Assembly (NCBI GenBank): GCA_028534125.1
Contig: CM052822.1
Location: 68,572,001 to 68,636,000 of the forward strand
Length of the DNA stretch: 64,000 bases
Source: Lama glama
Taxonomy: Eukaryota
Reading direction: 5' to 3'
The position numbers and the translations under genes are program-made. The notes beneath the pieces are model-generated. The model saw only the letters and a program-made list of their open reading frames with translations. It made no database searches and had not been told where the DNA came from. Shown piece by piece: positions 8,933-52,000 of the stretch. The number at the start of each line of letters is the position of its first letter. Position 1 is the stretch's first letter.

Positions 8933-9820
8933 ATGCGTCAGGCGTTCTTTTTTTCTTCTCTTATTATCTCAGCAATTGTGACTTCTGTTGGAGTCATTGC
9001 AAATCTGTTCATTGCAGTGACTAATTACAAGAATTGGGTCAAAAGCCACAAGATCTCCTCTTCTGATAGAATCCTGTTCAGCTTGGGCATCACCCGAGTT
9101 CTCATCCTGGGACTGAGTACTGTTTTCTTCATCTTTTCAAGTATTCGAAGGTCAGTCTCCCCATCCGCTTATTTCCTGTTGTGTTGGTTGTTTTTGGACT
9201 CTAATAGTCTTTGGTTTGTAACCTTGCTCAACGCCTTGTACTGTGTGAAGATTACTAACTACCAACACCCAATTTTTCTCCTGCTGAAACGAAATCTCTC
9301 CCCCAAAATGCCCAGGCTGCTGCTGGCCTGTGTGCTGATTTCTGCCTTTACCGCACTCCTGCATGTTGTGCTCCGAGAAGCATCACGCTCTCTGGAATTG
9401 GTGACCGGGAGAAATGGCACCGTTTGTGACATCAATGAGGAAATCTTCCTTTTGGTGAGCCCTTGGCTCTTGAGCTCATGTCTGCAGTTCTCCCTTAATG
9501 TGACTTCTGCTTCCTTGTTAATAAATTCCTTGAGGAGACACATCCAGAAGATGCAGAGAAGTGCCACTGCACTTTGGACTCCCCAGACCGAGGCTCATGT
9601 GGGTGCTATGAAGCTGATGATCTGTTTCCTCATACTCTACGTTCCATATTCAGTTGCTTCCCTGCTCCATTATCTCCCTTCTGTAGCGAGTGATTTGAGA
9701 CTCAAGTCCATTTATATTATTATTTCCACCTTTTACCCTCCAGCACATTCTGTTCTCATTATTCTCACACATCCTAAACTGAAAACGAAAGCAAAGAAGA
9801 TTCTTCACTTCAATAAATAG
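8933..9820 (+). CDS. TAS2R4: Bitter taste receptor type 2 member 4, intact intronless 295-aa 7TM GPCR
   Basis: TAS2R motifs: TM1 Asn (GVIANLFI), SSSDRILFSLGITR, SLWFVTLLNALYCVKITN, ECL2 sequon NGT, SLRRHIQKMQ, TEAHVGAMKLM, HSVLIILTHPKLK. C-terminus KTKAKKILHFNK is typical of TAS2R4. Confidence 0.96.
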   Translation: MRQAFFFSSLIISAIVTSVGVIANLFIAVTNYKNWVKSHKISSSDRILFSLGITRVLILGLSTVFFIFSSIRRSVSPSAYFLLCWLFLDSNSLWFVTLLNALYCVKITNYQHPIFLLLKRNLSPKMPRLLLACVLISAFTALLHVVLREASRSLELVTGRNGTVCDINEEIFLLVSPWLLSSCLQFSLNVTSASLLINSLRRHIQKMQRSATALWTPQTEAHVGAMKLMICFLILYVPYSVASLLHYLPSVASDLRLKSIYIIISTFYPPAHSVLIILTHPKLKTKAKKILHFNK

Positions 9821-17847: not shown

Positions 17848-18740
17848 ATGCTGACTGCCGTCCTAGGACTGCTGGTGCTGGTGGCAGTAGCTAAATTTCT
17901 CACTGGCCTGGTTGGAAGTGGAGTCCTTGTGGTCTGGCATTTTGGGGAATGGGTCAGAAAACTCGAGGGGTCCTCATATAACCCCATTGTCCTGGGCCCG
18001 GCTGTCTGCTGATTTCTCCTGCAGTGCTTGATTGTGGTGGACTTAAGTCTGTTTCTGCTTTTCCAGGGCAGCCATTGGCTTCACTGTCTCAGTGTCTTCT
18101 GGGTCCTGATAAGCCAGGCCAGCCTGTGGTTTGCCACTTGCCTCAGTATCTTCTACTGTAGGAAGATCACAGCCTTTGAACACCCTGTCTACTTGTGGCT
18201 GAAGCAGAGGGCCTGTTGCCTGAGTCGCCGGTGCCTTCTGGTGTACCGCAGTTTGTTACTTACATTCCACGGTGGCTTAGAGCTCTGCCATTCTTCCAAA
18301 GGAAACAGCAGCGTTTTATCCCCCTTTCAGACTGGCACCATGTGTATACATTACAGTTCAGTGCAGGAAGTGTGTTGCCTTTCATGATGTTTCTTATTTC
18401 CTCTGGGATGCCGATGGCCTCTTTGTGTAGACACCACAGGAAGATGAAGGTCCACACAGCCAGCAGGAGAGTTCTTCAGGCCACGGCTCACATCACTGTG
18501 CTGAAGTCCTTGGGCTGTTTCCTCATACTTTACATAGTTTACTTCGTGGCCATCCCCTTCTCCATCACCTCCAAGTCTTTTCCTGCTAATTTCGCCACTC
18601 TCTTCATCTCTGAGACACTCGTGGCTGCCTACATTTCTCTCCATTCTGTCATCTGGATCACGGGAAATCCCAGGTTGAAGCAGACTTGCCAGAGAATCCT
18701 GTGGAAGACAGTGTATGCTAGGAGATCCTGGGGCCTGTGA
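17848..18740 (+). pseudogene. TAS2R5: TAS2R5 pseudogene (premature stop plus frameshift)
   Basis: ATG at 17848 gives [25 protein letters not shown]..., then TGA at codon 55 (18010-18012, position of the conserved TM2 Arg). The same frame resumes with [21 protein letters not shown] 1-nt deletion in the C run at 18320-18324 moves the rest ([12 protein letters not shown]...[19 protein letters not shown]) into the 18195..18740 frame. Confidence 0.93.
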
Positions 18741-29594: not shown

Positions 29595-29735
29595 TCATTT
29601 GTCTTTAGCGATTTTCTCAATCCAGGGTATATACTTGTGAACGTCGGTGTAGATGCCCACATCTCCTCCCATGAAGTGTCCGACCTCGATCCCCTGGAGC
29701 TTGTCTTTGCAGATGACAGTAGCAACGGCCACCTC
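29595..29735 (-). CDS. PRSS37: PRSS37 exon 5 (terminal); catalytically inactive testis serine protease
   Basis: 141 nt, [46 protein letters not shown]. Exons total 34+142+254+137+141=708 nt = 235 aa plus stop. GDSGGP is replaced by EVAVAT. Confidence 0.95.
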
Positions 29736-29750
29736 CTACCAGGGATCGTG

Positions 29751-29790
29751 CAGAGAGAGACAGACAGAGACAGAGACAGACACAGAGACA
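29751..29790. repeat. (AGAGAC)n-type repeat at the PRSS37 exon 5 acceptor
   Basis: cagagagagacagacagagacagagacagacacagagaca; pyrimidine-rich on the coding strand. Confidence 0.8.
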
Positions 29791-30298
29791 GCTATGGTCA
29801 GATTTGCTCCTTACAGGAGCCCTGTAGTCAACTGGGATGAGCCCTGTCTGGAGGTAACATGCTCCTTGTCATGAGAACACTGAATCGGGATGCAGGAAGC
29901 TTGAGTCATTTATCTAGCTTTACTGTCACTAGCCTTCTGTGACCTTGAGAAGGTCAGAGAAAACCCTTTCTAGAACTTAAGTATAAAATGAGTGAAAAAC
30001 TCCATTTATTTGAATTGGTGAAGGCAGTTTCATTGTATGAAAAGTCTGAATTTTTTTTTTTAAGCAATACCCATTTTCACTGACAGCCATGTGAATAGGA
30101 ACCAGGAGTTACTAACTACGGTACTGCCTGATGCCCATTAACCGACACATTCGTCTGTAAGGAGAGCCCTTTGCTGGAGCCTTATCAAACCTCCAAGAAT
30201 GATGAGGATGAGGCCTTTCTATTTTTTTAAATATCATGATTAAATAGCTAACTAGACATATATGAGTAAGTGAAGGCTGAATATAGAGAAAAGATTAC

Positions 30299-30435
30299 CC
30301 CAAAAAGTCGATTGAGCACTTTCACAAATTTAACACATAAGGAGTTCCTGTGGCTTCTGCCCTGTTCCACCTCCTGGCATTCTGCATCAGACATCACAGG
30401 GGCCTCCAGGTTCTGCCTTAAATCAGGGTGTCTGC
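30299..30435 (-). CDS. PRSS37: PRSS37 exon 4
   Basis: 137 nt, [46 protein letters not shown]; acceptor ctcag, donor gtaatc. Confidence 0.95.
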
Positions 30436-31019
30436 CTGAGAGAAGACAGGGATAAAAGACCTTCAGTTCACGATTGTTATTTGGCCCTCCAGTCACCACC
30501 CTCTATTTCAACTGGTGTTCTTTTTGTGTGTGTGTGTGTCAAGAAAACAATGAGAAAAAGGGAAGAAATGAGCTTGTGCATGGTAATGAGTTAATCCTGA
30601 GAATCTTGAAATAGGCTTTATGTCTCTTTAAAAAGTAGGGTCTCAGTTTTACTCTGTGTCCTATCTTGGAGAAATTAGAGGTGTCCTAACTCAAATTCAG
30701 GTGTCCTCTATGTGTGCAATGAGCCCGTATGGGAGGGAGGAGCACAGCCTCTTTAATGTGAATTGTGCTCTGACAATCAGGAAGGCTGTGGCCTCTGTGC
30801 AGAGGCTGCCAAAAGCCCTGAAGAGGCAGTGGAGCATTAGATACTCTGGGAAAGGAGCAGCTTTGGACTTCTGGGAGGGTCTCTTTTTTGCCTCAGACCA
30901 CTCATGTAGTATCTCCCTTTGGTCTCCACCCATTCTCCTCCCTTCTCCGCCGTGCAAACATGGGTGCTCCTCTTCAGGGATAACAGATGACCCCGATTTC
31001 CTGTGGGAGGTGCACTCAC

Positions 31020-31273
31020 CGATGTTATCTTGGCTCCAGTCCAAACCTGAAATCAGACAGACGGTGCCTGGCTTGACGGCCTTTGTGGCGAGGGGAAGGA
31101 GCTGGACTTTGTGGTTGAGGTTGGCGGGCTTAGCCAGCTTAATGAGCATGAGGTCATCCTGGGGGGAACTATGACTGTAGTTCCAGTAGCGGATAATCTG
31201 GATCGGGTTCAGTATCTGCTCTGTCCCATCTCTGACTCTGGTCCTGAAATTTCCTAGCATCACTTTCAGATTT
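31020..31273 (-). CDS. PRSS37: PRSS37 exon 3 (Asp motif DDLMLIKL)
   Basis: 254 nt, [19 protein letters not shown]...[12 protein letters not shown]...GLDWSQDNI; acceptor ctgcag, donor gtgagt. Confidence 0.95.
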
Positions 31274-32259
31274 CTGCAGGGGTAAGGGGTTGGAAGAAAT
31301 ACTGTCGTCATCAAAGCTGATACTGAATGTTGCAGGGTGCCAGGTACGGTGCCAGGTGCTTCATCTGGATTCGGGATTACCTCATTTACCACTCACAGCA
31401 AATCTCTGAGCTGGATTCTATTTTGAATCCCCATTTTCCAGATGAAGTAATGGAGGCACATAAGGGTATTCACCCACGGTCACACAGTTAAGTGGTGGAG
31501 CCTTTAACCACTATGTGTTCATCTAATGTCTGTAATGTAGCAGAGAGGAGAAGCATGCAAGTCATAGAAATACTATTTTCCCTCCTCCCTAGCTCTAGCC
31601 TGTCCAGCTGGGCACTTCCATTCTGGTGGGGGTGAGAGAATGAGATGACTCGAGTGTTGGCTCTCTCCTGCTGGCATCATCAGAGCTACTGACAACCCTA
31701 TTTCATCCTACTCTGTACTCCGGAAGGTGGTACATGTGAATGAAATCAATGGGCTTTCTTGTCCTCTGGTGTCTAAGTGGGTTTTGGCCAATAAGAAGCA
31801 AGAGAAAGTATTTGGAGGGAGAAGAGTGAGGCTGGAGTATTTGTCCTCCCATCTTCCTTCCAGCAGGGTTGCCGCAGATTGCCTGCTGGCTGTTTATTGA
31901 TTAAAGGTTACAGCTCCTATCAGGCAGTCTCTCCACGCAGAGCTTTCTCTCCCCTGGCCCCTCACCTGCTCTTTATTTCCCCTTCCCGCCTTGTAATCAT
32001 TCTCTCCCCCCATCCCTTATACTTCTAGGGGTAGTAACTGCACCTTTCTAATACTAAACCTGGGGGGACTGAACTGTTCTTTGTGTTTTCCCTGTAACTA
32101 GACCATACCTTTGTTGTAAGTTCTTTTTATAAATTCTCGATCCAATCAAATTTGAATTTACCATCAGTTACCTGCTGGTCCTTAACTGACAAAACACATT
32201 CACATGGCCAGCAAAAAACTTGAAAAACCTATGGAAGACTGAGGAGGCATAATACGTAG

Positions 32260-32500
32260 AGCAGGGCTCCTCGGCAGTGGCACTATTGATGTTTTGGGCT
32301 GGATAATTCTCTGTTGTCGGGGGCTGTCCTGTGCATCGTAGAGAATTCAGCCGCATCCTTGCTCTCGCCTCTATTGGCTAGGTAGATGCCATTAGCGCAG
32401 CCCTCCCCTCACCCCTCCCTCCAGTGCGACAACCAAAAATATCCTCAGACTTTGCCAGATGTACCCTGAAGGGAAAAGTGCTTCTGTCTGAGAGCCACCA
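32260..32500. mobile_element. MER20-like hAT DNA transposon in PRSS37 intron 2
   Basis: ggcactattgatgttttgggctggataattct...caaccaaaaatatcctcagactttgccagatgt resembles the recalled MER20 consensus. Confidence 0.7.
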
Positions 32501-32551
32501 ATGCAGAATGAGTACTAGCTGTTTTAGTGGGTGAAGGTGCCCAACACTCAC

Positions 32552-32693
32552 GGTAAGTAGCAGTGAGCAGGGGCCAGCACCCAGCTGCTTTTGATGAGGA
32601 CACCCACACAGGGGTTGAAGTGGGACTTGAGGTATACCAAATAGGGAGCATGGTCTTCCTTCTGCGCGGATGAGTGAGCGGACAAAAATGTCC
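32552..32693 (-). CDS. PRSS37: PRSS37 exon 2 (catalytic His motif)
   Basis: 142 nt, [48 protein letters not shown]; acceptor ttctcag, donor gtgagt. Confidence 0.95.
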
Positions 32694-34110
32694 CTGAGAA
32701 AATAATATACATAAGATGTTCTTAGAACAAATAAGACAGTCAACAACTTCCTAGCTGAAAAGAGATATGCACGATTTTAAAGAAGTAATCAGTTGGCCAG
32801 GAAATGTGAAGATGTTTGACATTTTTTTCTAATAAGCATGCAAATCAAAGTGACATACCATTTTAGCATGATTTATAATAAATATCAGAACTATGAATGT
32901 CCAATACGATAATGTTGGACATTGAAATGAAAAAGCGCATGAATAAATGGAACATCATATATATTAAAATTGTATTTATAAAGAATATTAAACAGCAAAG
33001 GAAATATTGGTAACCTTTCTTTAAGTTAAAAAATAATAAAAATGTACATTTAATCCCTTAATCTGATTGTCTAAAAAAAAGTAAATAAACAAAAATAAAC
33101 CATTAAAAATAAACATATGAAACGTGGAAGTAAGTTAGGGAATAAATTCAAACAAAGCATTGGCAAGTGTTGACTGGGAGGTGAGATTATGAATGATGTT
33201 TATTTTTTCTACTTTTTAGTATTTCCAAATCTTCTAGTATGAACATGCGGTGCTTTTATAAATGAATTATCAAAAAGAAAAAAAAATTAGAGAAGAAAGG
33301 AGAGGAAGGCTGATTCTAGTCTCCGAAATAGTGTTCTTGTCTCAGCTGCCCTTGGTTCTTATGCCAGTCCTCCCAAGCCTAGGCCTGGACCTCTGTGTGG
33401 TCACACAATTAGAAACCACATAGGGAAAAAGGTGGTGTATTAATAAGGAGAAGAGATATTGAGCGCTTGTTCTAAGTGCTTTACATGGATTTATTCAATC
33501 TTCACAACAGCTCTATAATGTAGATTAGTAATATGCCCACTTTGACTGTAGAAACTGAAGCACAGGTAGATTAGTCAACTTGTCCAAGCTCACCAGGCTA
33601 ATTTGTGATGCAACCTAGGCAGTCAGGGAGTGGTGGGAAAGGCCTCGCCTGCAAATTCTGCCATCAGAAGAACTTCGTGGTCGACAGGGAGTGCAGGAGG
33701 AAGGGCCCTTGCATTTGACCTTTCGTTCCCACCTTCTCCACTCCCTGCCTTCTGAGTCTGTAAGCTTTTGAAAAAGGGGGGAGATCAGAGGTCATCTGTC
33801 CTTGTGACTACACTGAGACTTATCCACTGTGTGATGGGCCCACATTTTGGAATAACCAGGGTGGAACACTCACTGTTGAGCTTTCTCCAAGGCAGGTGTA
33901 CACCATAACGTACCCCTTAGCTTAGCACAGGGGGCTCAGCCTGTCTTGAGAGCGTTTGACTGGGGTCTGAGCAGGGAGACCCTTGTTCTGCTCATTCTGC
34001 AGTTTTTCTTGCCTCTCTTTTTGCACCTTCTGCACATCCTGCATCTGCCTTACTCCATCCTACATTAGCCTGTTCCTTATAGAACAGAGCAGAAGGTCAT
34101 GGATACATAC

Positions 34111-34144
34111 CAGCAAGGATACTCAAACAGAAGATAAATTTCAT
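34111..34144 (-). CDS. PRSS37: PRSS37 coding exon 1 (signal peptide)
   Basis: 34 nt, MKFIFCLSILA+G, donor gtatgt, phase 1. Confidence 0.9.
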
Positions 34145-37100
34145 AGCAGTCCAGATCTTTCCCTGTGAGGTGTGGAAGGTCAGAAGAGCATGGACCTCTC
34201 AGCTCAGTCTTCTCCTCGGGAACACCTGGGAGAATCGTGGATGTGGTTGGGGATGGGGACATGTGGTGAGGTTGGAAAGAAGCTCTGGGCAAAAACAGGG
34301 AGGAATAAGAGGGCTCCCTACAGACAGATGGAGGCCCTACTGCTTCAGGGAAGGTGGAGAGGGGGGAACTGTGCCTCTATTGGGGTCTCTCAGGAAGGAC
34401 AAAGAAGCCTAGTTCCTAGACTTCTGGATTCAGGTCCCTCTTTGCTGTCCCTAGAAGTCCATCTGCCTAAAAGTAGTTCAACTGCCTGTGGGAAAGGGAG
34501 CTCTAGGCTCAAGACTTATTTCCCCATGGAGTTTCTGAGGCCAGGGCTGTGGAGGACAGGATTCCCCACCTTAGTTCAGGAAGGCAGTGTCCCTTGGTTT
34601 ACTCTGAACCCCTCGATGGTTACTTATACTTCCCATGAGCCCCTCCCATCTTTATTACACTGGCTTCATCTTTCCCTGTGATCACTATTTCATCATTCAG
34701 CCATCATCACCAGCTTGGTCTGGTTGTTGTGATCAGCAGCTTTGAGCTAAGAAAATGTGAAAATAAAAAGCATTCATAGAGCAGTTTTGACAGATGGGGA
34801 ATGCTTTATATTCTAGATTACATTCGATCTAAGATCTACTGAATGATTGGTGACAATTTAGAAGGCAGGACCTCTAAATGCTATTTACCTCATGAAAAGA
34901 TTTCTCACCTAATCATAGACTGCCACTGTCATTGGATAATTGGGAGCACACTCTAACAAGAAAAAGAGCAGCGACGCTAATAGCTCACATTCATTGAGCA
35001 CTTACTGAATCCCAGGCACTGAGTTAATTCTTTACAGGCATTGTTGGTGGAGATTTTATATCAGGTTAGTCTGAGATGTAAAAGTAAACACTTTGTATAA
35101 TTCCGAACATTCAAAATTTCTTAAACCTATAATCTCATTCCAGTGTCACAACCACCCTGGATAGAGGACAGGGCTGGGGCTAGTATCATCCCCCACCCCA
35201 ATCTATGGGTGACAGAACTGAAACAAAGAATTTGAATGATTTTCTCAAAATCACACGTGACTGAAAAGACTAGAAGTCGAATCTATGTATGACTGGATGC
35301 CCACAACTTTTCAACCACATCCTCCAGACTTCAGCTAATTAACCAGCATCCATGGATCTTGGAAAGCTTTACAGTCCCTCACACAAATTCCCTGAAATGC
35401 AGAATGAAAAATTGGCACATACTTTCCTGAACCTCACAACAAACACAGGGGTACGTTGGAAGTTGGGCTGGTTTATGAAATACACTCGAGGTTTGAAGAC
35501 AAGATGGAGTTGTGGAAGGTTTTCTGTCGTGGGACTGGGCTTAGTTAAAACAGGTAAAACTTTGAGAAAGAGATATGCTTTACTTTCAGGTTGTTTTTCC
35601 TAGATCTTTTGGAAAGATTCTGGGCCAGGAAGGGAGTTTGAGGCTGGTTTTGGCGTACGAGGACTGAGAACAGAAAAGCAGATTTTCTGGAGGAGTTGGC
35701 GCTGGGAACCACTACCTGTTGATGAGTTTCAAACTGGTGTCTCTAGCCCAGAGCTCTGGTCCCACATATACAACTGCCTCCTGTAAACCACTGTTTGCAT
35801 CTTTTTTCTGCTCCTGAAATTTAACAAGTCAAAATTAAACTCCTCATTCTTCCAGCCTTTCAAATTCATTCTTCTGCCTGTTTTCCTTAGTTTAGGAGAA
35901 AACTCTACCTTCCACTTGTTTAATTTTTCTGTTTTTGCGACCACACAACCCCAAAGTCCATTCTACTTCCTGAAATCTCTTAAATTCATCCATATCTTTC
36001 CATTCTCGCTGCTGTCACCCTAATCCAAGTCATACTCTTGTCTCGCTTGAACTAATGCATGTGATTTTCTACTGTTGCTCAACTTGACATTCTTCTACTC
36101 AGATTTTTTTTCTAAAATGTAGCATCTCTGAACCTCAGTTTCCTTATGTGCAACATGAAAAACATAACTTCTAAGTTTTAAGACATAATTTCTAAGTTTT
36201 AAGAACATGTGAAACATCCTAAACCTGTGTTAGAGTGAGTGGAGTTAACCAAGTGAAGTGAGGTGGATTGTTTCAGACAGAGGACCCAGCCAGTGGACTG
36301 GAGTGCAGAGGAAGGAAGTGGACTGAGTCATTTGATTTTAGAAATGATCCTGGTCTGGGTGAAGGTCAATGTTTATTCTCTCTCTGGACCCTGGTTACAC
36401 CATCCCAGCAGGAGGGGAGTGCTGACTCATAATACCTCATTGTGAATAGGTAGGGTGAGGTTAACTTCCCTCCTCAACCATGCTGACATCTTTTGGGTGA
36501 AGATGGAGCTCTGTCACATGCCACTTACTGTCACCAAATAGGGGCGGAAGCTCAGCTCCCTCTGGCCCCTGCTCACACCAAAGGGGTGAAGGGAATTGAA
36601 GATTTGCATAAACTAGCACATTTCCATATTGAAGGTTTGGGATTGAAACTCAGCTCCCCACTGGGCTCTGCTTTACTAAGGGATGGAAGAAGCAGTGTGC
36701 TGACCAGCTCTGCCTTACACAGCCTTGTTCAGTCTCGTTGTTGTCAGATGGTGGTGAAGGCTCAGCAACCTGCTGGGTCCTCGGGACGCAGGGCAGGGCG
36801 TGGTGGAGGGAGGGAAGTAGAGCCCTGTTAGTCCAGCCTCGCATCTCCCCCTTTGCCCTCCTTGCCACTGGGTGAGGCTCAGCTTTCCCCTCTGCCCTAC
36901 GCACACCAGCCTGGTTGGGGATTTGGAGTATTGCCTGCTTCCACTGAGACTGGGGATGGAAGGTTAGCTCCCTGCTCAGCTCTGGTGAAGCCATGGTGGG
37001 TGGGCATTTTCCCACTTTTTTTAGAGTGGGTGTTGTCCAAAAGATTTCCTTTCCATTAGACCACCCTTTCCCCTTTCCCTTAGCTAAGGGGAGCAGGGTT

Positions 37101-38670: not shown

Positions 38671-41501
38671 CGTTTTAAAGAGACATACTATATCCAAATA
38701 TAGAAGGTAAACACTGAGATTTTGTGCCACCAGTATGTATTTTGCCTATATATTTTCTAAGTAGCATGAATTTAAAGATTAAAAGTCTACTTTACATAAT
38801 AAAGAAAAAAAGACTTAGATTTATGTACTGGAAGACCTTAGAGTAAGAAGGAATGGCATTACGTATGCCAGTGGTTCTCAGCCTTTTCGAGCGTCAGAAC
38901 CCCTTTTAGTCTTGAAATCTTTTGAATCTTTTTATGATAATTGTTAATTAAAACCTTATGTAATAACAAAAAGGGTGAATTAACTCTACATGTTAAAGCA
39001 ATTTGTCCTATTATCAAAACAGTGTTTAACTGGATTTCCTGTCCACTCTACTTGGGAAACAGATCTCACATCCATCTTAACTGCTGCCACGTTAGCACAA
39101 GCCACATCACTTCTGGCTAGGTCTGCTTTATTTAAGCCTGTTTCCACTCATGTCTAGTCAGAAGCAAGTGATGTTTAAAAAATAGAATTGGATCATATCA
39201 CTCCCATACATCAAATTCTTCAAAATATTTCTATTACATTTAGCATAAAATACAAAATTCCTGACTGTGGCTTCGAAGACCTGATTGATGATTCCTGCCT
39301 CCCCTCCAGGCTCATTCTAGGCCAATGTTTTCCTTGCTCTCTATGCTTCACTCTCACTGGCTCTTTTCAGATTCCTGAGCACTCCTAGTTCTTTCCCGTT
39401 TTTGAGCCTTTGCACATGCAGTTCCTCTCCTGGAAAACTCTTTCCCCTAAACTTATGGCCGTTTTTCCTCATCTTTCATGTCTCATATTATCTGTTGCTT
39501 TCCCAGCAAGTTCTTCTTTGCTAACCAGACTAAATTAGATCCTTCATTTACTGCCATTATTTATTCTTTCTTGTAGAACACTGTTACTGTCTCATCACAA
39601 TTTGTAACTATTCACTCATGTGCCTGCTTATTTGTTTATTGTCTACCTCCCTCATTTAATGAAGACAAAGTCTGCTTTTGCTTGGATACGTCTTTATATT
39701 TAACATCCAGTGTATTGCCTGGTACATATAAATATTTAGTAAATTAAAAAAGTAAATGCATGCATATATAGATTTGGAATAAAATACACATGTATGTATA
39801 CATAATATTAACTTTCAGTCGTCTCATGATGCTTGCTTCACATATGGATCCATAAAACTGTTGCATTAATTTCAGAAACGTCCAGTGGACCCCTGCACAC
39901 AAAGTGAGCTCTACCCTAATCTCTCATTAATTCATTTGTATAGTACATATGTACTGAGATCCTACTATGTGCTAGGCATTGTGTTCAATGCTGGGGATAT
40001 TTTATAAATCATTGTTCCTTCACTATTTAATGTGTAGATGAAAAACCCATAGACCCAGAAATATAAATTGACGTAGCAAGAGAAGCCCAAACTGGAACAT
40101 AGATTTTAAAAATTGATAGTTTCTTATTTTCCTGCCTCCTTTCCTAAACTGGGGAAAGCAGGATATGATCTAACTTGTTGAACCCACTAACAAAATGCCA
40201 CCAAGAACACACCAGTAATTTTTTCTTTTAATGAGGTTTATTTTGCTTTATGCAGCAGGGAGAACACACTTCAGAGAACCTCAGAAGTGCCCCAGCAAGG
40301 GGGAGCTGGAAGGAGTGTCTTATGGGGTTTGAACTTGCGCTGGATAATTCTGAAGATGAAGTTAGATGTGTGGGGTCAGTTCAGAATTAGATGCAGTGAA
40401 GAAGAAGGAGCAATTTGGTAACTGGGTACCTCAAAAGTCTTTTTTAGGAGGTAGGAGGATTAATTAGGGCTAGAGCTGTCACTGGTAAAGAAACAGCAAT
40501 AGTAAAAAGAAGGGTGGTTATCAGTCACTATCTGATGTTAGTTATTTGGGGGGTCATAGAGAGGGTTTGTCTGTCTTTTTCTGAGCTTTATTTTGCACTT
40601 TCTTAACATAAAAATAAAAATGTTCTTGAAACTGCATTAGCAAGAAATAACATTTATTGAATACACACATTATATGTCAAACATTCTTCCAAGCTATTTA
40701 CATACGTTAACACATTTAATCTTCACAACAACCTTAAGAGAGAAGTTCATTTATGATCTCAGTGTACAAATAAGAAAGTGAAGATATAGAGGTTTACATA
40801 ATTTGTTCAAGTTCATACTAGTAGTGAGGATAGAGCTAGAATTTGAATCCAGGTCCCTATTTCCAGAGAAAAAGTACTGTACTATATTTAAATGCCCATC
40901 GGTACAAAGTATTTTCATGCCAGAATTAAAGTGTTAATTTTAAATTTATTTAATTGTCATGGTGACTGGCCTCACAGCAAGCCTGCAGTCCACTAGTAGG
41001 AAAAGGTTGCTGTAGAAAAGACTGTATTGCTGTGACTATGGATAGAACCAAGAAGCCTTAAGAGTTTGGGAGATTGGAAATGAGCTACGCCATTCTGAAA
41101 AGCTACAGACAGGGTGAGGAGAAGCAGGCAGGTCCTGCTGAGAAGAAGTACATACATAGGATTTGGAATCAAACTAAAGTCGGAATCCTTGAACCAAGCA
41201 TCATTCACTAGTTGTGTGGCTTTAACTAAGTTTCCTAATGTTCTTACTCTGTAAAATAATATAAAAATTATCCACCCACTTTTTTTTTCCTGTGAAAATT
41301 TAAAAGTTTTCTAAAGTACCTATATCACTTAGTACAGTGTTTGTACAGTATGGAACTCTACTACCACAGGGCAGGCTAGGTGATTAATGTGGTAAATACT
41401 TGTATTATCTGACACTGGTGTCTTGAAATCTCCGTAACCACCCCAGGTTCCCTTTACTCAGCGGGATTGTATCCCTTGAGTCTCCTCTTTCTGTGTTCCA
41501 G

Positions 41502-41643
41502 GTGTTATTTCATTTGTTAGTGAAGATACCAAAGGCTTAAGTAGTCTTTTCTACTTATTATACTTGAAATCCAGTAACCAGTCTTGTATGGGGACTCTGA
41601 TTGCTCCTAAGTGGATGATAACAGCGGCACACTGCTTCTTACC
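41502..41643 (+). pseudogene. PRSS58/PRSS37-like pseudogene, exon 2
   Basis: 142 nt after ttccag, GVISFVSEDTKGLSSLFYLLYLKSSNQSCMGTLIAPKWMITAAHCFLP. Has the TAAHC motif and the same length and phases as PRSS37 exon 2. Donor mutated to ATAAGT. Confidence 0.9.
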
Positions 41644-42084
41644 ATAAGTGATGGGGAGCAATCTGCTCTGTTAAGGCTTCAACGCTGGGACTCAACACTT
41701 CTCATGGAAATTGTGAAAAACCCATGCTGATCAGGAAATCCTAAGAATTTGATGGTGAAGGGGAGGGAGCTCAGCTACCCGGATAAAACCTAACTACATA
41801 GCCTTATGTTTAACATGTTCAGAAAGGAAAAAGTAATATGGTATAATATATCTCACATACATAATAAAAATAAACCTGCAAATTGTTCTTAATGGTTTTA
41901 AGATTCATCTGAACTTTTGGATTCATCCAAACTTTTATTTTTCATTGCTATATAATATTTCAACGTGAATGTCACACAATTTGGTTCATTCTTCCCTTGA
42001 CAGATATTTGAGTTATTTCTAGTTTTCTACTGTTTTGAACAGTTACTTTAAACATACTTGTACCATGTACCTTAAAAATATATA

Positions 42085-44180
42085 TCTGTGTAGCAGTTAT
42101 TCACTGTAGTCTAATAAAGTATCATCCCAGTAGGGAACCCTGAACAGTTTAGATCCTCCCATGTTGTATTCTGAAATAACCACTCTGTATTTCATTGATT
42201 TTCTTTTGTTTGGTGATCTCTGAGGCAGGATTCAGAGTTTGGCAATGCAACATGAAGGAGTAGGAAAAGTATTGAAGTGTGGGTGGAAAACTTGTTAAAA
42301 ATCTGAGAGTTTGAAGTTTAAGCTAAAAGACATTTGAATTTGGAATTGACTGGGAGGCCAAAGATTTAAAGAAGTGGAAGATTCTCTCAAGATACGAGGA
42401 GTAAGTTGTGTTTTGCTTGTGTGTTTTGTGTGCATGATGGAGATTTGTAAATGACGTTGAACTCTGGGTGAATTCTCAACTCCAACAATCATTGTCAACA
42501 GAAAGTCAAGCTGCAAATATTTATGCTTTAAATCTTAAATTATAAGCCTAGTTAAATCTTTCTAACAACTAGTTTTAATGTTCATGGGTACATTTTATGT
42601 AAGTTACTTTTTACAGTATATATGAAAAGATTCATGCTAAGTACAAATTATAGAATGGAGATCAGTTTGGGGAATAGGTTTTTGTGGATTTGTTGATACT
42701 TTAAAAGAAAAAGATTTGATTTCTGGGGAATTGGGACCAATTTTCTTATCTAGATTTTAAGACTAGAATGCCCAAAGCAAAAGTATGAAGGAAATTACAA
42801 TCCTTTTTTAAAGTGATCCGTGAAAACATTGTTACTGGAAATTGAATAGACTTGAGTCCTTGATTCTGGAAAATAAGGATTTGATTGTCAGGCCTATATT
42901 AGGTTCTGAACCTTAATGCCATATATTTGTACTTATTAAAATTTTTTTCCATGAAAACTACATTAGTAATATGATCTTCTGGTCTAGTTGGGAGTTGATT
43001 TGAAAAATGTGATATTTGCATGGGACTGTTTGAATCTTTGTTTTTTCAGTTTCCCCTCCTGGATAGGATTGAAGCTAGAATTTTCCCTTTTGATAAAGGA
43101 ATAAAAAGTAAACATGTTATTTGTAAATTAATGATTAGTGCTAGAGAGAAAGTTGAAATACTTAGAATACATTATAAGCCTAATCCTAGGTAGCCATATA
43201 AAAATATTGATTTTTAACTGTCTTCTAAACCTGTATTCACATTGGTTTTTCAAGATATTTTAAGTTATATTTTCCCTTTTCAGGGCTGCTTCTATGGCAC
43301 TGCTTTTTTTTTTTTTTTTGTAAATTGAGGTGTAATTCACAAAGGGCTGCATTTTTTGATAAGGTTTTTTACAACTATGGTTCATGTTTTACTCTAGTCT
43401 TCTAAGAAGGGCCATTTTACTTTTTAGAGTCACTTCTAATGTCATGTGGTATTTAACTTTGGGGACTATTTTGCATATGAATGCTAATTCAGATTTAAGC
43501 TTAAGTCATCACTTATCTCTCCATGAATGTTGACAATGGAAGTAGTACCTTTCCTGTAGTTTCAGTTCTTGACTGAAAGGCTGGGGAAAGGAACTTCATT
43601 TTCTTTTTTTGCATATATCAGGAAAACAGCTATTGTGTGGTTACCTTGTTGACCTCAGCAGATGAACTGGACTGATAGTGTTAATTCAGATTTAAGAAAT
43701 TATCTGAATCTGGGTTTGTGTAGATTTGTGATCTACATGTAATATTAACTAGATCAGATAGATTTTACATTTTCATATATGTACATAGGCCCTTCCCACT
43801 CATCAACATCCATTAGTTTATGGAACTTGTAAGCTGGCATCGAAACGTTGTAATGCTTTGTTGCACTAGTTTTATAAGCTTTTACAGTGCCATACATGTT
43901 ATGTTTCAGAGACAAACCAAAGGTTAATTTCTCAAGGTTCTTACTGTTTGCTTTAGCAGCATTTAATGGGAGATCTTTTATATACATTTGTAATAGATGA
44001 AAAATAAACCAGATTGCAAATCTTTTTTTTTTTTTTAAATTTTAAAGCAAACCATGTACCAAGTTTTTGGTACAAATTGTGTAGGATAAGTTAAATTTAA
44101 ATTGCATTCTTTTAACCAGTATGAGTGTGTTATAAGTATAGTTATGTTGAAATAAAGTTTTAAAAAGCAGGGAAAAAAAA
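42085..44180 (+). pseudogene. 5'-truncated processed retrocopy of an mRNA 3'UTR (parent gene not identified)
   Basis: AU-rich, UTR-like, non-repeat block ending in AATAAA (44151-44156) and a short A tail. It interrupts an old L1 that continues on both sides. Candidate TSD aaa(a/g)atatatat. Confidence 0.65.
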
Positions 44181-44199
44181 GATATATATGTATGTATGT

Positions 44200-45520
44200 C
44201 TGTGATATATATTTTGTACATATATGTGTTGATATATGCACATATTGGTTTATATCTCTAAGTATACTTCTTGGTATATAACTAGAGTATGTAATTAGGA
44301 GCTGAATTGCTGGTCATAGAGCATGCAAATGTTCACTTTTACATACCCTCCAGCAGTTTATGAGTCCTTCCAACATTGGATATTATCAAACTTCTCAATT
44401 TTTTTGCTGATTAAGTGTCAAATATCTTATTATGGTCTGAATTTTATTACCTTTACTAGTAGTGATAATTAGTATCTCCCCCCTTCCCCACCATCCTCCT
44501 CCTCTTCCTCCTTCTGACAATAATGTTTCTTTGGGAAAATATTCTTTTATGTCTTTTGAACATTTTGTGTATTAAATTTTTAAAATACTGCTTTGTAGGA
44601 CTTCTATAAAGGCTCTAGATATTACTCATTTGCTAGTTACATATGTTGAAAATATCTTCTTCCATTCTGTGGTTTGATCTTCTCTTTATGGTGAATTTTG
44701 ATGAATAAGAGCTCTTAACTTCAATATAATTTAATTAAAACGAGTTATCAGTCTTTATCTGTGATTACTGAGCATTGTGCCTAGTTGAAAATATCTTTTA
44801 TGACCTCAAGATCAGAGAGATATTCCTTTACACTTACTTCTACAGATTTTAAAGTTTTGATTTTCATATTTAAATTTTACATAATTTGGATTATAATTTT
44901 TGTGAATGATGTGAAGTAGGGATCCAATTTCATTTTTTTTAACATTTTTTAAGCTAAAAATCCAAATATCGTTTGTCAGTGGTCCCCTTTTTCCCCAGTG
45001 ATTTACAGTGCCTACTCTGTCATTTGTCAAAGTTCCATCTGTACGTGGGTCTGTTTCTGGGTTGTTGCTGCTGTTCAGTTGGTTTATTTATTATAGACCA
45101 CAATGCCTTAATTATTATGCCTTTATCATAATTTGTGATTTCTGATATGGTAGCCCAGCCATCTTATTCTTCATCAGGAATGCTTAGGAATTCTCTTACA
45201 TAAATTTAAAAATTAGCTTGTCAATTTCTATGAAAACCTCTGTTGGGATTATTTGGAATTGCTTTGACTTTTTATATATTGATATTTTTCTGATATTGAT
45301 TGTTCCTAGCCATGGATCTGAGATAGCTCTCTATTTATTTATGTTTATCCCTTTGATGCATTTCAAGAGTGTTGTATTATCTGCATACATTTCTCACACA
45401 TATCTTATTAAATTTGTTCTTAAAGTGCTTTATATTTTTCTATCATATTTTAATTGAAGTACTTGCATACAATTATATTTTCTGTTTATTAGTGATGATG
45501 GAAATGCAATTAATATTCAG
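44200..45520 (-). mobile_element. Old L1M ORF2 fragment (continues the piece at ~41930-42070)
   Basis: gaattgctggtcatagag, gtagggatccaatttcattttt, aaaattagcttgtcaatttct. Confidence 0.7.
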
Positions 45521-46617
45521 AAATCGAAGGGAGCATATGTTTGGTGTAGAGGACCAAACAGACTGAGATGATCCAATGAGAAATACTGCAACAGTCAGCA
45601 AAGACAACTTGGCCAAAGACAAGTCATCTCCACCTGGAGGCCCAGCAAAATCCTTTGTTCCAAGCAGATAAAATTAAGTATGGTAGTTCTCAGGAACACA
45701 CAAAAAACAAGACTAAGGAAAGTCCTTATAATCTTTTGTAAAAGTGACCCAAAGCAAAGTTTGTCTGAAGGATGCTGCTCTGATGAGCTCTTCTGAACTT
45801 GTCAGTCCCTGGGGTTGGCTCAAGAATGCACTTACCAGGCCTATTCCTTTTCTAGTCCTTTAGACTTTATCTTATAAACTCCAAACAAACTGACAAGAAC
45901 AGACGGAGAGACAGATGGTACTGCTGTCAGGAGGCAAAATAAACTTAGCAGTTGGGAGTGCACCAACAAAATTTATGCTCAGTACCAATTTGTACTTATT
46001 TCACTATTGTGGTTGGGGAGATCCCTGAGAGGGAGACTCAGGGGTCTCAGAGGAGTGTTCTTTCTGAACATAGGGTCTTGAGCCATGTTAGTGAGTGGAT
46101 CTCAGTTGGATTTCAGTGGAACATCCAGGATTTTTGACTACTGTTCTCCTAAAGGACCCTCAGAAAACCCTGTTAATTCAGCAAAGTTTTGATTGAGATG
46201 AGTAGAGCATAGTATATTTGGATCCTCCCTAGCTTTAAAATATTTCAACTCTATAAAATGTTATTTATTTCATTTGTACAATCTCCTATTTCCTGTCTCC
46301 CCCACAACTCCCAAAAGAGCCTTCCTAACAGAACCTACTACTTTCAGAGAAGCCGTGACTATCTACTCACATGCTTCTTTCAGTTGTTTCTAGATCTTGA
46401 ATTGGAGCTTCTCCCTGGAAATATGCTAAGATTGGAGACCAAGCTATTGCGTTGTTTAACTCCTGGAGACACCATTCACGCTATAATCTATGTGAATGGA
46501 AACCCATTGAATTGTATAGTGGACAACCTACATGACCACATGTGGTGGCTATGCATAAAGGGTCAAATGGACAGAGATGAGAGGAGAAGGTTTAATGGGT
46601 CACTATGGAAGGAAACT

Positions 46618-46644
46618 CTGTGTGTGTGTGTGTGTGTGTGTGTG
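46618..46644. repeat. (TG)n microsatellite
   Basis: Directly visible, ~55 nt upstream of pseudo-exon 3. Confidence 0.9.
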
Positions 46645-46699
46645 ATTAGCCTTGTGATGTGTGATAGGATCAATCTTTTTTTTCTCCTTCATTTTCCAG

Positions 46700-46951
46700 A
46701 GATCTCCAGGTCATCTTAAATGGTGGTAGCCAGAGTTTTCAAGACTTTACTGGGGAGATTCTGCCTTATGAAAAGATCATTGTTCACCCAAACTTCACTG
46801 TTACTTCTCCTAAAAATGATCTTATGCTGATCAAGTTGTCTGTTCCTCTTTACCTTCTTTTCCATCAGCATTTTTCAGTTGCCTACTGTCAAGGCAGAGA
46901 ATGTTAGAAATTGCCCGGTTTACACCTGCTTAGAGAATAAAGAATCTTTTG
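46700..46951 (+). pseudogene. PRSS58/PRSS37-like pseudogene, exon 3
   Basis: After ttttccag: DLQVILNGGSQSFQDFTGEILPYEKIIVHPNFTVTSPKNDLMLIKLSVPL, then a frameshift near 46850, then TFFSISIFQLPTVKAENVRNCPVYTCLENKESF|gtgagt. 252 nt is out of phase. Confidence 0.9.
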
Positions 46952-47462
46952 GTGAGTGACTGTCAAAAAGAAGAGTTAGCTGCCTCCTTAGATATATTCA
47001 CATCTTCAGGATCTCTGAGGAACTAGGGGAAGGAATTGGAATGTATTTCTAACCACATGTGCAAAGCTAGAAAGAGAGCAACAAATTTGGAGCTTCAGAG
47101 TGCTTTGGGAATCAAATCTTAAATCAAAGTGTTGCATGTATCTATCACATGGGGCACACATTGCAGAAATCTGGGATTCAGGGACTTATGTTTGAGTTTT
47201 GGTTCTGCTATTTATTCTAGGGTTATTGACAAATTCTTTAACTTCTTTGAATCTTAATTTGCAAGTTGATGAAAATTATATTTTTCCTTTATCTATCACC
47301 TTACAGCGATATGGTTATCAGTTACAGTGATATGGTTATCAATTACAGCACGATGATAATAGCTACCATTTGTTGAGCACTAATTATGTCCCAGGCACTT
47401 AGTATCCTATACATGTCATTTAGTTGTCATCATACATCAAGTAGATAAGTTTTCTTAGGATT

Positions 47463-47614
47463 AATTATTTTTAAAAAATTATTTATTTTATTATTTTTTG
47501 GTGGGGGGAGGTAATTAGGTTTATTTATTTATTTAGTTTTAGAGAAGGTACTGGGGATTGAAACCAGGACCTTGTGTATGCTAAGCATGTGCTCTAACAC
47601 TATACTCTCCCGTC
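47463..47614 (-). mobile_element. tRNA-derived SINE, camelid Vic-1-like, with 17-bp TSD
   Basis: Same family as 21306-21448. Flanked by taagttttcttaggatt at 47446-47462 and 47615-47631. Inserted in a MIR. Confidence 0.88.
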
Positions 47615-47945
47615 TAAGTTTTCTTAGGATTTATATCTTATAAATGAGGAAATGAAGACTTAGGGGGATTAACTAATTGTCCAAGGTCACAAACTTGATG
47701 ATGGCAGAGCTTGGATTCAGATCTTGTTTGATGTGTGGAGTGTCTTGGTTGGTACCACTCTGTGATGCTGATCATCTTTCAAAGACGATAAGTGAGCAGG
47801 AGGATATGTTTAATCCATGCTATATTCCATCAGTTCTTCCTCTGAAGCCCATTTTAACTGAAAAGAGGCCGTGAAGGAGAAAAAGGCAAGATGCCTTATG
47901 AAAATGCAAATTGGAATGAAAGTCTCCTTTATTTCTCGTACTTAG

Positions 47946-48071
47946 GAAATTCAAGAAGTAACCTGTATAATTTTCAGAAAAATTATTGGGTGAAAAAAAT
48001 TACTGGGTGAAAAGTTTCTTTAAGACATGTTCTGTATAGGAAGCATAGCACAAATCAGAGATAAATGCCAG
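47946..48071 (+). pseudogene. PRSS58/PRSS37-like pseudogene, exon 4
   Basis: Acceptor cttag; 3' part reads KLLGEKFL*DMFCIGSIAQIRDKCQ|gtaacc (trypsin-like MFC.G...D.CQ). In-frame TAA, internal short duplication, 126 nt instead of 137. Confidence 0.75.
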
Positions 48072-48453
48072 GTAACCTTCTTATCTCATTTGCCTATAAG
48101 CTCAACCCTCTTTGCCTTTGTGTCTCCATTACCTCTCATCCTTCATTGAGGGTCTATATTTCGCAGTCAGGCTGAAAGCACAGAGTTGAAGAAAGATGAC
48201 TGTGTCTCACCCACCCTGTGTTAGAGATGAGAGAAATAGATTTTTTAGATTTTTATATCTTCCAGCTACTGTTTTGAAATTTCTGTCTAGGGATGATTGG
48301 GAGGTAGGGGTAGTCAGTGCAGCGGCAAGAAGCTTTCACACTATTATATCTGGGGCCCTTTTGCAGGTCAATATACTAGCGTTCATTTTTTTCAAGTGTT
48401 AAGGAATTCCCAGACGGGAGGGAAGTTCTGATCCCCTCTGCTCTGTCTGGCAG

Positions 48454-48602
48454 GCGGTCAGAGCTGCACCAGTCACATGTGGCAGCGAATTACATGGAGT
48501 TATATCTGGGCAACCGGATGTATTCTGAGAGATCGTGTTGTTGTCTTCACTGACATCCACAGCTACATGCCATGGATCAAGAACATTATGTCTACAAAAT
48601 AA
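48454..48602 (+). pseudogene. PRSS58/PRSS37-like pseudogene, exon 5
   Basis: AVRAAPVTCGSELHGVIS / 1-nt deletion near 48506 / WATGCILRDRVVVFTDIHSYMPWIKNIMSTK*. Parallels recalled PRSS58 [32 protein letters not shown]...YIPWIENV. Confidence 0.9.
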
Positions 48603-49050
48603 GCTGATAGAGAACTCTACTGACACCCTTACATCCCAGCCGATCCATGACAACCACACTGAGTATTTCAGTCTCAGTTTTTCCTAGGATCTAGGCTTGA
48701 TTGGAGTTTCGAAAGAGATCATTAATGACTCCTGGGTGTTGGCAATCCTCTCGTTTCTCTAACTGCTTCTTTGCTTATCCCCAGCTCATGAGTGAGTGTT
48801 TATAACGATGAAAACATGAATGCTGGTCTTAAGAAGTAGAGTTCACCCAGGAAGCTTTTTGGATTCTACCAACTCAGACACTTCTGTTAAAATACTCACT
48901 GTTTTATCCTGAGAACACAGAAAACAAGTAGAAATGATGGACAGTAACTATCAGGAGTCTATTTGGGCTAGATGCAACCACATAACTGAACAGTATTTGT
49001 CTGAAATGATTTAGCAATTCTTCTAATGACCAAATGTCTCCTGGGTGAAT

Positions 49051-49086: not shown

Positions 49087-52000
49087 CTATGGGGGTTGTA
49101 GTTAATGTTTCCATTGGCTACTTAAAAGATCTATAGAATTCAAATTTTGCTTAGGTTGTCTGAGGCCACTAAAAGGTCAGTATAATTTTTGGATTAAGGA
49201 TTTCTGTATTTTGAGGTACCGCTGTAATGCATATTACAGATATTGAAGATTTCATGAATGGTAGGGTGGGTTTTTTCCAATACACTTTCCTTCCAGTTCA
49301 CTGATTTTTTATTCGCTTAAAAATCACACATACTTTCTTAAAGGGGAACAAAGTGATAGAGTTCATGAGGATTTTGCTTGGGAGTGTTCATCCGTGACCC
49401 TGAATGTACCTTCTAGGCCATGCAGGGATTCATGGGCACACACTTCCATCCACAAGCACACCCAAAAGACACTTGTTTGTCATTCCAAAAGTGTGTTCTC
49501 CACATACGAAGGTTCATTAATCCATGATAGATTAAACTGATTTTGAACCAAAACCTGTTAATTTTCATATAGAATATTGAGCATTCAAGAAATTTCAGAG
49601 TATCTGAAATGTAAAATGCAGTTTTGTTTTGTCCAGTGCTCTGAAGTACTGGGATTCATTTGTTCAAACTGCTATACAATTGATATAAATCACTGACTTT
49701 CACAAAGCTTCACAAAATCAAAACTGTCCTTCCTTTTGAGACTATTATGGGGACCAGATATAATGTGATGAATGCTCAGTGTGCTTAGGAGGGGTTCAAG
49801 AATTGGCCACAGTTAGTAATTTTAACAGTTTCCACGTGTTTCACCCTTTTGTTGACTTAATTCCTACTCCGAGTTGTTGGAGATACTCTCCATCCTTACC
49901 CCATATTCCAGATGGTGTATTGTCCTGAGCAAATAGCAGCCTGAACTTTTCATTGGCAGTATCTTCCCAACAACCTACCCATACTTTTGTCCTCACTTTT
50001 CCAGTCACACACACCTGACTGCCTTCCTCCGTCTGTGGTTGTTCTAGATTGAATCATGCCCTTTAATTCTAAGCCTTTCTGATTGATTGGGTCACCAATT
50101 CTTCAACTATTGGGCATTTTTACTTCTTCATATCATCTGGATTTGAGTTTTCCTGGTATGAATTCCCTTCTCTCCATCTCATCTCACTCCCTGCTATAAA
50201 AAGGAAAGGATAAATCATCCCCTCATCTATCTAATTATCTATCTATCTATCTACCTATCTAAACTATGATTGGACTGTTAATGACTCTACTAATTTTTGG
50301 AGAATGTCAGTATCTTTCTAATTATCCTGTCAATTTCTCCTAAACTCAAATCCTGTAGATAATTGATTCCAAAGCCTTTTCTTTCCTATCCCACATTTTA
50401 ACTTGGTTTACCAGTAACTTCACGAAGCCTGTACTCTGTCTTCTCTCACAAGCACATCCACCTCCCTCTATCCTGACATGCCCATCAATCACTGTTGCAT
50501 TCCCTTTCTGGTTCCCTTTTCTCATAAGCATGGGTTGGGGCTGATATTCCATGCCCTTCTCTTTAGCTTAAGACCATTGCATTAATGGATCTCTGGTACA
50601 AAACAACAGATTGCAGTATGGTAACTGGAGAACACAACACACAATGGGAACATGAAGGCTTGCCCTGTTTGGTCAGGTGGATGGTTCCCCTCTACACCCT
50701 CGTTCCCATCTGGTCTCCAACCATCTGATCCAATCATATCTGACCTTCAGCTCGGGAGAGAGATCATTTTTGGGGGGTCTATAGCTTTATTTATAGATTA
50801 CTTCAAAGATCCTTTCTAAACTTGAGTGTAAATGTTATATATTTGGCTTCTATTTACCCCTAATTTATTCTATTTTTATTTATTCATCTCAGACCTATTC
50901 CAGCTTCCTGAAGAGTTCAAAAATCTGATTGTGGGTCTTCATTTCTGATGGTTCCCTCAGTAAACTACTCTAATCTCATCGTGTTTATCGCCACATACTT
51001 CTAACATCACATCTTTTCTTCCCCAGTTCACCTCCTTCTTTGGAAATATGTAGGGGATAGATATACAGTGGACTGTGGTTTGATTCTTAGCCTAGAATTG
51101 ACAAACTATGTGAATTTAGAAAATCATTGGGCTTTGGTTTTTAGTTTCATTTTATATACAAAACAAGAGTTAAACTTGATGCCGTCACTAGTGGACACTG
51201 TGACTGCCTCCCCAGCATCCATTCTACCTCTCCTCTATTTATGTTCAGTGTTGAGATAACCCTGTAAGAGCTATGTTGAGACATTGCTGGGGGCAGTGTG
51301 GCATGTATTTGAGAATCAAAATTGCTGCTGTCATTTTGCAACTATCAGGGAAGCTACCTAGGGATGAAGGAATCAAAACAAGAGAATCTTCCAGAAATGT
51401 AGCTGAAGTCCCAATAAAAGCATGCCAGAATGTAGGTCTTCTCTCTAGATATTTTTAGTTATCATCTACTAAATTCCTTTCAATGGGTTTAAGTCAGTTT
51501 GAGTTGGGCTTTCCGTTGCTATAGTTAAAAACATCTCAAATGACATAGTTTCCAAAATCCCTTCTGTCTCTGCATCAAGCTAGACTTACTGTATGTGAGG
51601 TTCTTTCTATGTTTATTCTTATTTTCATGGGATATCTGTGAGGTCATTTTAATGGACACAAATCTGCAACTCATAAGATCTTAACTGCCTCTTTCTTTCC
51701 AAAGGCATTGCCAGCCTCCTGGATCATACTGCTGTCACCTTTCCTGGGCTCTTTCCAAGCTGGCTGGAGGCCACAGGAAGCTCTCATGTCCAGAAGCTGA
51801 TCCTATCCAGGCCAGGTTGCCACGCTACTTTAAAACTTGTATGAAAAGCCACACTTTCAGACCTTGCTTTGGGCTTCCTGAGTGATCGTCAAGGGCAAGC
51901 TGGTACCATCGTGAATTCTGAATAGTTATCTCCTGGGGCGTGAACCTTGACCAATGAGAAATGAGATGCGGGGTGGGGGAAACCATACAATTAATACCCT

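Follow-up and report, generated by a model that had tools for sequence, protein, structure and literature searches.

PRSS37 (TRYX2), PRSS58 (TRYX3) and PRSS59 (TRYX5) belong to one small trypsin-like family. According to two reviews (PMC13184221, PMC9114714), knockout of PRSS37 in the mouse leads to the loss of ADAM3 and to failed sperm migration, ADAM3 is also lost after knockout of TRYX5, and both proteins are needed for the maturation of ADAM3, the passage of sperm into the oviduct and male fertility. In this study, we analysed a stretch of 64,000 nt from Lama glama (GenBank assembly GCA_028534125.1, contig CM052822.1, positions 68,572,001 to 68,636,000 of the forward strand), hereafter the window, in which trypsin-like exon remnants lie at 41502-48602 on the plus strand. 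We refer to these remnants as the fossil, and the public proteins compared with it carry codes of the form P0001. We believe, with a probability of about 0.9, that the fossil is a unitary pseudogene and that it is the camelid orthologue of a mammalian pseudoprotease gene in its own right, which we call clade B and which stands head-to-head with PRSS37 and downstream of TAS2R4/TAS2R5.

The fossil gene resembles PRSS37 in its trypsin fold and in having neither a working Ser195 nor an IVGG start, and the 5' ends of the two genes abut. Unlike PRSS37, which forms a separate clade, it belongs to clade B, and its pieces are 35-50% identical to PRSS37. The corresponding identities (medians for exon 2, for exon 3a, which is the first part of exon 3, and for exon 5b) are 50-60% to PRSS58 and 36-57% to PRSS59, both of which form starred clades separate from clade B. 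Ser195 is kept in 24/30 PRSS59 and 14/36 PRSS58 proteins, whereas this column holds Thr in 24/30 clade-B proteins. The ..TAAP pseudoprotease motif is common to clade B and PRSS58.

Four Exon Remnants of a Trypsin-Like Gene

The initial annotation had described four plus-strand exons in this region, and we found their lengths, coordinates and splice dinucleotides to be exactly as given there. The exon 2 remnant (41502-41643, 142 nt) has an AG acceptor, AT in the place of the donor and an open frame that is translated as ..CMGTLIAPKWMITAAHCFL(P). The exon 3 remnant (46700-46951, 252 nt) and the exon 4 remnant (47946-48071, 126 nt) are both bounded by AG and GT, and the exon 5 remnant (48454-48602, 149 nt) has an AG acceptor and a closing TAA at the orthologous stop position. 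The motifs TAAHC, NDLMLIKL, MFCIG..DKCQ, AAPVTC and YMPWIK, which had been named together with the exons, are all present in them.

The fossil exons were compared piece by piece, always as unjoined sequences. Two of the six pieces matched the Pfam family Trypsin (PF00089, cutoff 20.6 bits): exon 2 scored 26.8 bits (E=5.5e-6), above the cutoff, and exon 3a scored 19.2 bits (E=1.2e-3), just below it. The remaining four pieces, which at 24-41 residues are too short to score, had no Pfam match; the intact orthologue P0057 scored 112.6 bits against the same family. When exon 3a was searched against the PDB, 35 distinct sequences were returned at E<=0.01, all of them trypsins or TMPRSS2. Local tblastn with the intact hippopotamus orthologue matched exons 2, 3, 4 and 5 at E=8e-18, 6e-29, 4e-7 and 1e-13, respectively, and the matches were colinear and all on the plus strand. 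The trypsin likeness of the fossil exons is beyond chance. The trypsin-type exon layout is also kept, with the fossil exon ends at the splice points of the orthologues (after ..AAHCxxP and after ..CQ) and with splice phases that add up once the indels are allowed for. The triad and GDSGGP of an active enzyme are not complete in the fossil: TAAHC and NDLML are present, but AVRAAP replaces GDSGGP, so that the Ser195-equivalent residue in the exon 5 remnant is Arg.

The Fossil Belongs to a Separate Clade

Because single exons lie below the length window of the protein search tool, the search began with a profile that combined one exon piece with one PRSS37 protein, and one full-length hit then served as the next query. 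A quick tree of 135 rows was built from 10 PRSS37 representatives, all other matches of 195-300 aa and 5 outgroups, leaving out P0048 (a 372-aa dromedary model, seemingly two genes run together) and three TAS2R-trypsin chimeras. A careful tree of 72 rows contained four unjoined window pieces as separate rows. Both trees recovered five strongly supported clades, namely PRSS37, PRSS58 (241-aa proteins), PRSS59, clade E and clade B, and the PRSS59/TRYX5 clade contained the rat 'trypsin X5' (P0150).

In the careful tree, all four window pieces fell inside clade B (100/97, starred). Exons 2, 3a and 3b stood together with the Camelus bactrianus model P0120 in a cetartiodactyl subclade (98/95, starred), and the short exon 5b piece was placed to the level of clade B only. 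The PRSS58 clade (100/99) excluded all window pieces, the PRSS59 clade (100/100) excluded them as well, and the PRSS37 clade was supported at 100/100. The inner branching of clade B follows the mammalian orders, as expected of orthologues. A possum protein (P0128) was the sister of clade B, with weak support (89/72) and a long branch.

The similarity scores gave the same placement. For all six pieces tabulated, the median bit score was highest against clade B. With exon 3a, the median scores were 84.9 bits for clade B, 36.8 for PRSS58, 32.7 for clade E, 32.1 for PRSS59 and 30.8 for PRSS37, and the median identities were 78% to 30 clade-B proteins, 54.7% to 36 PRSS58 proteins and 34.7% to 10 PRSS37 proteins. 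The reconstructed protein had been described as closer to PRSS58 than to PRSS37 and clearly diverged from both, and the last three values agree with this.

These results bear on the alternative that the fossil is not a gene of its own but a copy that arose by displacement or duplication of PRSS58, PRSS59/TRYX5 or PRSS37. Such a copy might be suspected from the public name 'serine protease 58' of its relatives and from the ..TAAP that they have in common with PRSS58, but clade B is separated from all three clades at the supports given above. Furthermore, clade-B and PRSS58 proteins occur side by side in single species, as P0066 and P0065 in Herpailurus and as P0087 and P0084 in Talpa, respectively, and the agreement of the inner branching with the mammalian orders also speaks against a copy. 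Nesting within PRSS58 or PRSS59 is contradicted by the tree because the pieces sit in the separately supported clade B. We therefore regard a copy as very improbable, and the proposal of the initial annotation that this is a separate ancestral gene, apart from PRSS58, PRSS59/TRYX5 and PRSS37, stands.

Clade E (for example P0130, P0137, P0143 and P0166) consists of 17 proteins of 229-298 aa named 'serine protease 58-like' and is strongly supported. Its Ser195 column holds Ala in 10/17 proteins, and in the jaguarundi its chromosome-sized contig is not one on which clade B or PRSS58 is found. Clade E may also be without a name of its own.

Clade B in Other Mammals

The clade-B models of Zalophus (P0057), Herpailurus (P0066), Myotis (P0073), Talpa (P0087), Capra (P0078) and Hippopotamus (P0092) are about 236-237 aa long and carry NCBI/UniProt names. 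They have the same exon structure and order as the fossil, are about 67-88% identical to it per piece (66-74% for exon 2), and share with it both the tree clade and the neighbourhood of TAS2R4/5 and PRSS37. These models are open frames, whereas in the fossil one donor is dead, the frame is shifted three times, two stops interrupt the reading and an ATG exon could not be detected. The gene had been supposed to be lost in this lineage and possibly intact and unnamed in other mammals. That it is intact elsewhere is borne out by carnivores, bats, horse, rhinoceros, mole, rabbit, hippopotamus and ruminants, for all of which there are full-length models (236-237 aa). That it is unnamed is true in a limited sense: we found no separate symbol or paper for clade B, but automatic NCBI names exist, even for the partial C. 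bactrianus model. Either 'probable inactive serine protease 58' or 'serine protease 58-like' is used as the label, and members of different clades cannot be told apart by their public names. A literature search, which did not cover supplements that might bear expression tables, found no paper treating clade B as a separate gene. We could not place a horse 'PRSS58-like' transcript on ECA18 or a cat LOC entry with the name 'probable inactive serine protease 58' in any one clade.

Among the 103 proteins returned, 41 were clade-B-like, from Carnivora (8), Chiroptera (13), Perissodactyla (2), Eulipotyphla (2), Dermoptera (1), Lagomorpha (3) and Cetartiodactyla (12). In the triad columns of clade B, His57 is kept in 27/30 and Asp102 in 30/30 proteins; besides the Thr in the Ser195 column, VVTAAP is found in place of GDSGGP. 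As read from the sequences, the signal peptide of these proteins is short and an IVGG start is lacking. The clade-B product is thus predicted to be a pseudoprotease like PRSS37.

Several clade-B models have an unusual form. The pig model P0129 (165 aa) runs into intron 3, the pygmy sperm whale (Kogia) model P0124 (211 aa) leaves out exon 2 and lacks two conserved residues, a Trp and a Cys, and the yak model P0126 (188 aa) is truncated or otherwise odd. No baleen-whale or warthog clade-B protein was among those returned. These oddities and missing proteins may represent independent losses. The C-terminal 45 residues of the yak model match 50892-51038 on the plus strand of the window, 2.3 kb past exon 5 (E=3e-5), and this match might stem from read-through or from an additional, alternative 3' exon of the ruminant models.

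Disabling Lesions and Their Age

An AT donor, three frameshifts and an in-frame TAA had been reported for this locus. Against the orthologues all of them were seen, together with a second stop, TGA. The donor of intron 2 (41644-41645, plus strand) is AT instead of GT, and read-through gives TAA as the next in-frame codon; the orthologues splice exactly at the end of fossil exon 2 (..AAHCFLP|DLQ..). Exon 3 has one extra T (+1) in the T run at 46849-46851, and the frame switches between 46850 and 46852 relative to every orthologue query that covers exon 3. The conserved Trp of ..YTW.. in this exon has become Cys. In exon 4 there is an 11-nt deletion between 47969 and 47990, where 25 nt stand against 12 residues (36 nt) of the hippopotamus protein; TGA at 47991-47993 replaces a conserved Cys, and TAA at 48021-48023 replaces a conserved Glu. 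Exon 5 carries a 1-nt deletion at 48505-48509, where the Ser-Trp codons read TCTGG and the frame switches at 48507. A 17-nt tandem repeat in exon 4 was also considered and was rejected as a chance likeness of two adjacent codon runs, the true lesion being the 11-nt deletion.

The four exons keep the intron positions and phases of the family and are jointly unable to encode the protein. The fossil is thus an intron-bearing, non-processed copy with disabling lesions, as a unitary pseudogene should be. When the indels are allowed for and the 37-nt ATG exon of the orthologues is added, the ancestral exons would have summed to 37+142+251+137+150 = 717 nt, corresponding to 238 codons plus a stop. 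Apart from the lesions, the decay is modest, judging from the aligned sequences: the pieces cover 57 of the 62 columns conserved in >=24/25 intact clade-B proteins, and 2 of these are changed, while the two stops hit two further conserved residues. By a rough estimate, decay of this extent would be expected if the sequence had drifted neutrally for some tens of millions of years.

The model P0120 is a partial protein of 180 aa from Camelus bactrianus, named 'serine protease 58-like'. It represents the same locus in the sister tribe, is 98% identical to the fossil over exons 2 and 3a, and has in common with it the +1 frameshift of exon 3 and the Trp-to-Cys change. After ..SVPL, P0120 reads the shifted frame for eight residues and then returns to frame. 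Old World and New World camelids separated about 16-17 million years ago. Because the same shifted frame is present in P0120, we consider the exon-3 frameshift to be real and older than this separation. P0120 differs from the fossil in three features, namely a second 1-nt change that restores the frame inside exon 3, an end that runs into intron 3, and an ATG exon (..MKCMLLALLMIT), the counterpart of which was not found in the window.

The recurrence in P0120 is also important for the alternative that the gene is intact in the animal and that the lesions are assembly or consensus errors. The lesions were read from the assembly only, and short runs of T, in which a consensus often goes wrong, contain two of the three indels. 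However, there are six separate lesions of varied kinds, including three substitutions (GT>AT, TGA and TAA) and an 11-nt deletion; the frameshift of exon 3 is seen again in a second genus, in an assembly made independently, and the model from that assembly ends right after exon 3; and no ATG exon was found in the window. An intact gene is, in our judgement, highly unlikely, and we continue to read the fossil as a unitary pseudogene.

Head-to-Head Arrangement with PRSS37

PRSS37 occupies 29598-34285 on the minus strand as the head-to-head neighbour of the fossil, with exons 5 to 2 at 29598-29735, 30299-30439, about 31024-31272 and 32551-32703, respectively. Its exon 3 is 100% identical to the Camelus ferus model, 39/39 database candidates are PRSS37, and the PRSS37 of the window appears intact over exons 2-5. 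Mapping of the C. ferus PRSS37 model to the window placed its 5' parts at 33647-33763 and 34113-34285 on the minus strand. On the plus strand, 5' exons of the hippopotamus, sheep and muntjac clade-B models matched 34257-34316, 34526-34582 and 35412-35474 (tblastn E=0.003, 4e-6 and 0.007, respectively). These 5' exons are probably untranslated, and 34257-35474 is likely the ancestral promoter end of the fossil gene. The head-to-head layout proposed in the initial annotation is therefore visible in the mapped 5' exons, with clade B at 34.26-35.47 kb on the plus strand and PRSS37 at 33.65-34.29 kb on the minus strand. Because the 5' exons map there in opposite directions, the clade-B gene and PRSS37 start back to back within a few hundred bases. 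Such back-to-back starts would fit a shared bidirectional promoter.

The C. ferus model in question (P0001, 'inactive serine protease 37-like', 30700-34285, minus strand) was built wrongly: translation of intron 3 gave rise to its C-terminus, and upstream non-coding exons supplied the first 100 residues. These intron- and UTR-derived parts match the window at about 90-92% only, and by this measure the window comes from a camelid that is probably not Camelus.

The ATG exon of clade B (..MKC.LL.LLMIT) was not found by motif scans and permissive tblastn with the N-termini of five clade-B models in the whole window (without N runs). A KC..MVTG-like stretch at about 40.93-40.97 kb, where the initial annotation had let the gene start, gave E=69, has no donor and was taken as chance. 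Two minus-strand matches, one of 13 residues in PRSS37 intron 2 (31548-31586, E about 0.1) and a weak one at about 51177-51218 across the exon 4/5 junction, did not extend and were rejected.

A pseudogene of this kind may still be transcribed from the promoter region that it has in common with PRSS37. The dead exons could be expressed and spliced as a non-coding RNA in reproductive tissue, which is compatible with a unitary pseudogene, and we hold this to be a tentative possibility with somewhat less than an even chance. Two RNA-Seq runs labelled 'reproductive system metagenome' (X15 and X16) hold 0.25 and 0.24, respectively, of the sampled words of 46600-48650, and exons 3-5 make up 527/2051 nt (0.257) of this interval, which is near the word shares of the runs. 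In addition, three of four acceptors and two of three donors in the fossil are counted as still canonical. On the other hand, the quarter of the words that the runs contain may be intron, repeat or DNA carry-over, so that we take the word shares as no more than a hint of transcription. An Rfam scan of the window returned no RNA family at threshold.

Taste Receptor Neighbours and a Probably Conserved Position

The window also contains a TAS2R gene at 8933-9820 on the plus strand, which is open, encodes 295 aa (Pfam TAS2R E=1e-77) and shares 55% identity with the N-terminal part of a seal model that bears the name TAS2R4. A TAS2R5-like relic follows at 17899-18740 on the plus strand, with two open reading frames (ORFs) that match Pfam TAS2R at E=5e-21 and 1e-34. 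The two lie in different frames, the part that aligns with the argali model is interrupted by a stop in frame, and the gene looks dead.

Three public models fuse a TAS2R exon to the clade-B gene, namely P0121 (elephant seal, 'TAS2R4'), P0127 (bat) and P0081 (argali), and the fusions are annotation artefacts. The N-termini of P0121 and P0127 map to the TAS2R ORF of the window (8933-9160), the N-terminus of P0081 maps to the TAS2R5-like relic (17899-18108), and the remainders of all three map to the fossil exons. Moreover, clade-B and PRSS37 proteins lie on contigs of the same reported length in Talpa, Myotis, Rhinolophus, Oryctolagus, Erinaceus and Rhynchonycteris and on a 1.4-Mb scaffold of Hipposideros. 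These observations indirectly suggest that clade B is placed downstream of TAS2R4/5 and beside PRSS37 in other mammals too.

Possible Role and Meaning of the Loss

In species that keep the gene, clade B would encode a secreted trypsin-fold protein without a working active site, with His57 and Asp102 kept and VVTAAP at the active serine. By analogy with PRSS37, it is probably a non-catalytic helper in the maturation of sperm surface proteins. In camelids, this role may have been lost or become redundant before the camel and the llama separated.

Some points count against the interpretation that we prefer. For the lesions, which are assembly readings, P0120 gives independent support for the exon-3 frameshift only, and the DNA runs of four organisms hold 0.91-0.95 of the sampled words, a measure too coarse for single indels. 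The ATG exon is present in the Camelus model and was not found in the window, which points to a deletion or an assembly problem. No primate, rodent, afrothere or xenarthran was among the 41 clade-B-like matches from the clustered public database, with 133 candidates of untold source set aside, so that their absence reflects missing annotation and is not proof of loss. Finally, the function of clade B in other species is deduced from its paralogues only.

The parent gene of the fossil is an annotated but not separately named pseudoprotease neighbouring PRSS37. A wider picture, which we put forward as speculative and rather unlikely to hold in full, is that clade B is an ancient and so far overlooked member of the PRSS37/PRSS58/PRSS59 family of testis genes, possibly pre-placental in view of its weakly supported possum sister, which would be driven by a bidirectional promoter with PRSS37 and would act with PRSS37 in ADAM3-dependent sperm migration. 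It would have gone unstudied because human and mouse lack it, and the loss would have occurred several times, with camelids as one case and pigs, whales, primates, rodents and afrotheres as probable others.

For database users, the name 'serine protease 58' mixes at least four different genes, and the camelid locus should be annotated as a pseudogene and not as a partial protein. A close PRSS37 paralogue, with a promoter region that the two genes probably share, is present in dogs, cats, horses, bats, rabbits and ruminants, and none is found among the annotated proteins of model species. Clade B could therefore be a confounder when results from mouse and human are applied to livestock and companion animals, and its patchy loss provides natural knock-outs for probing the function of the family.

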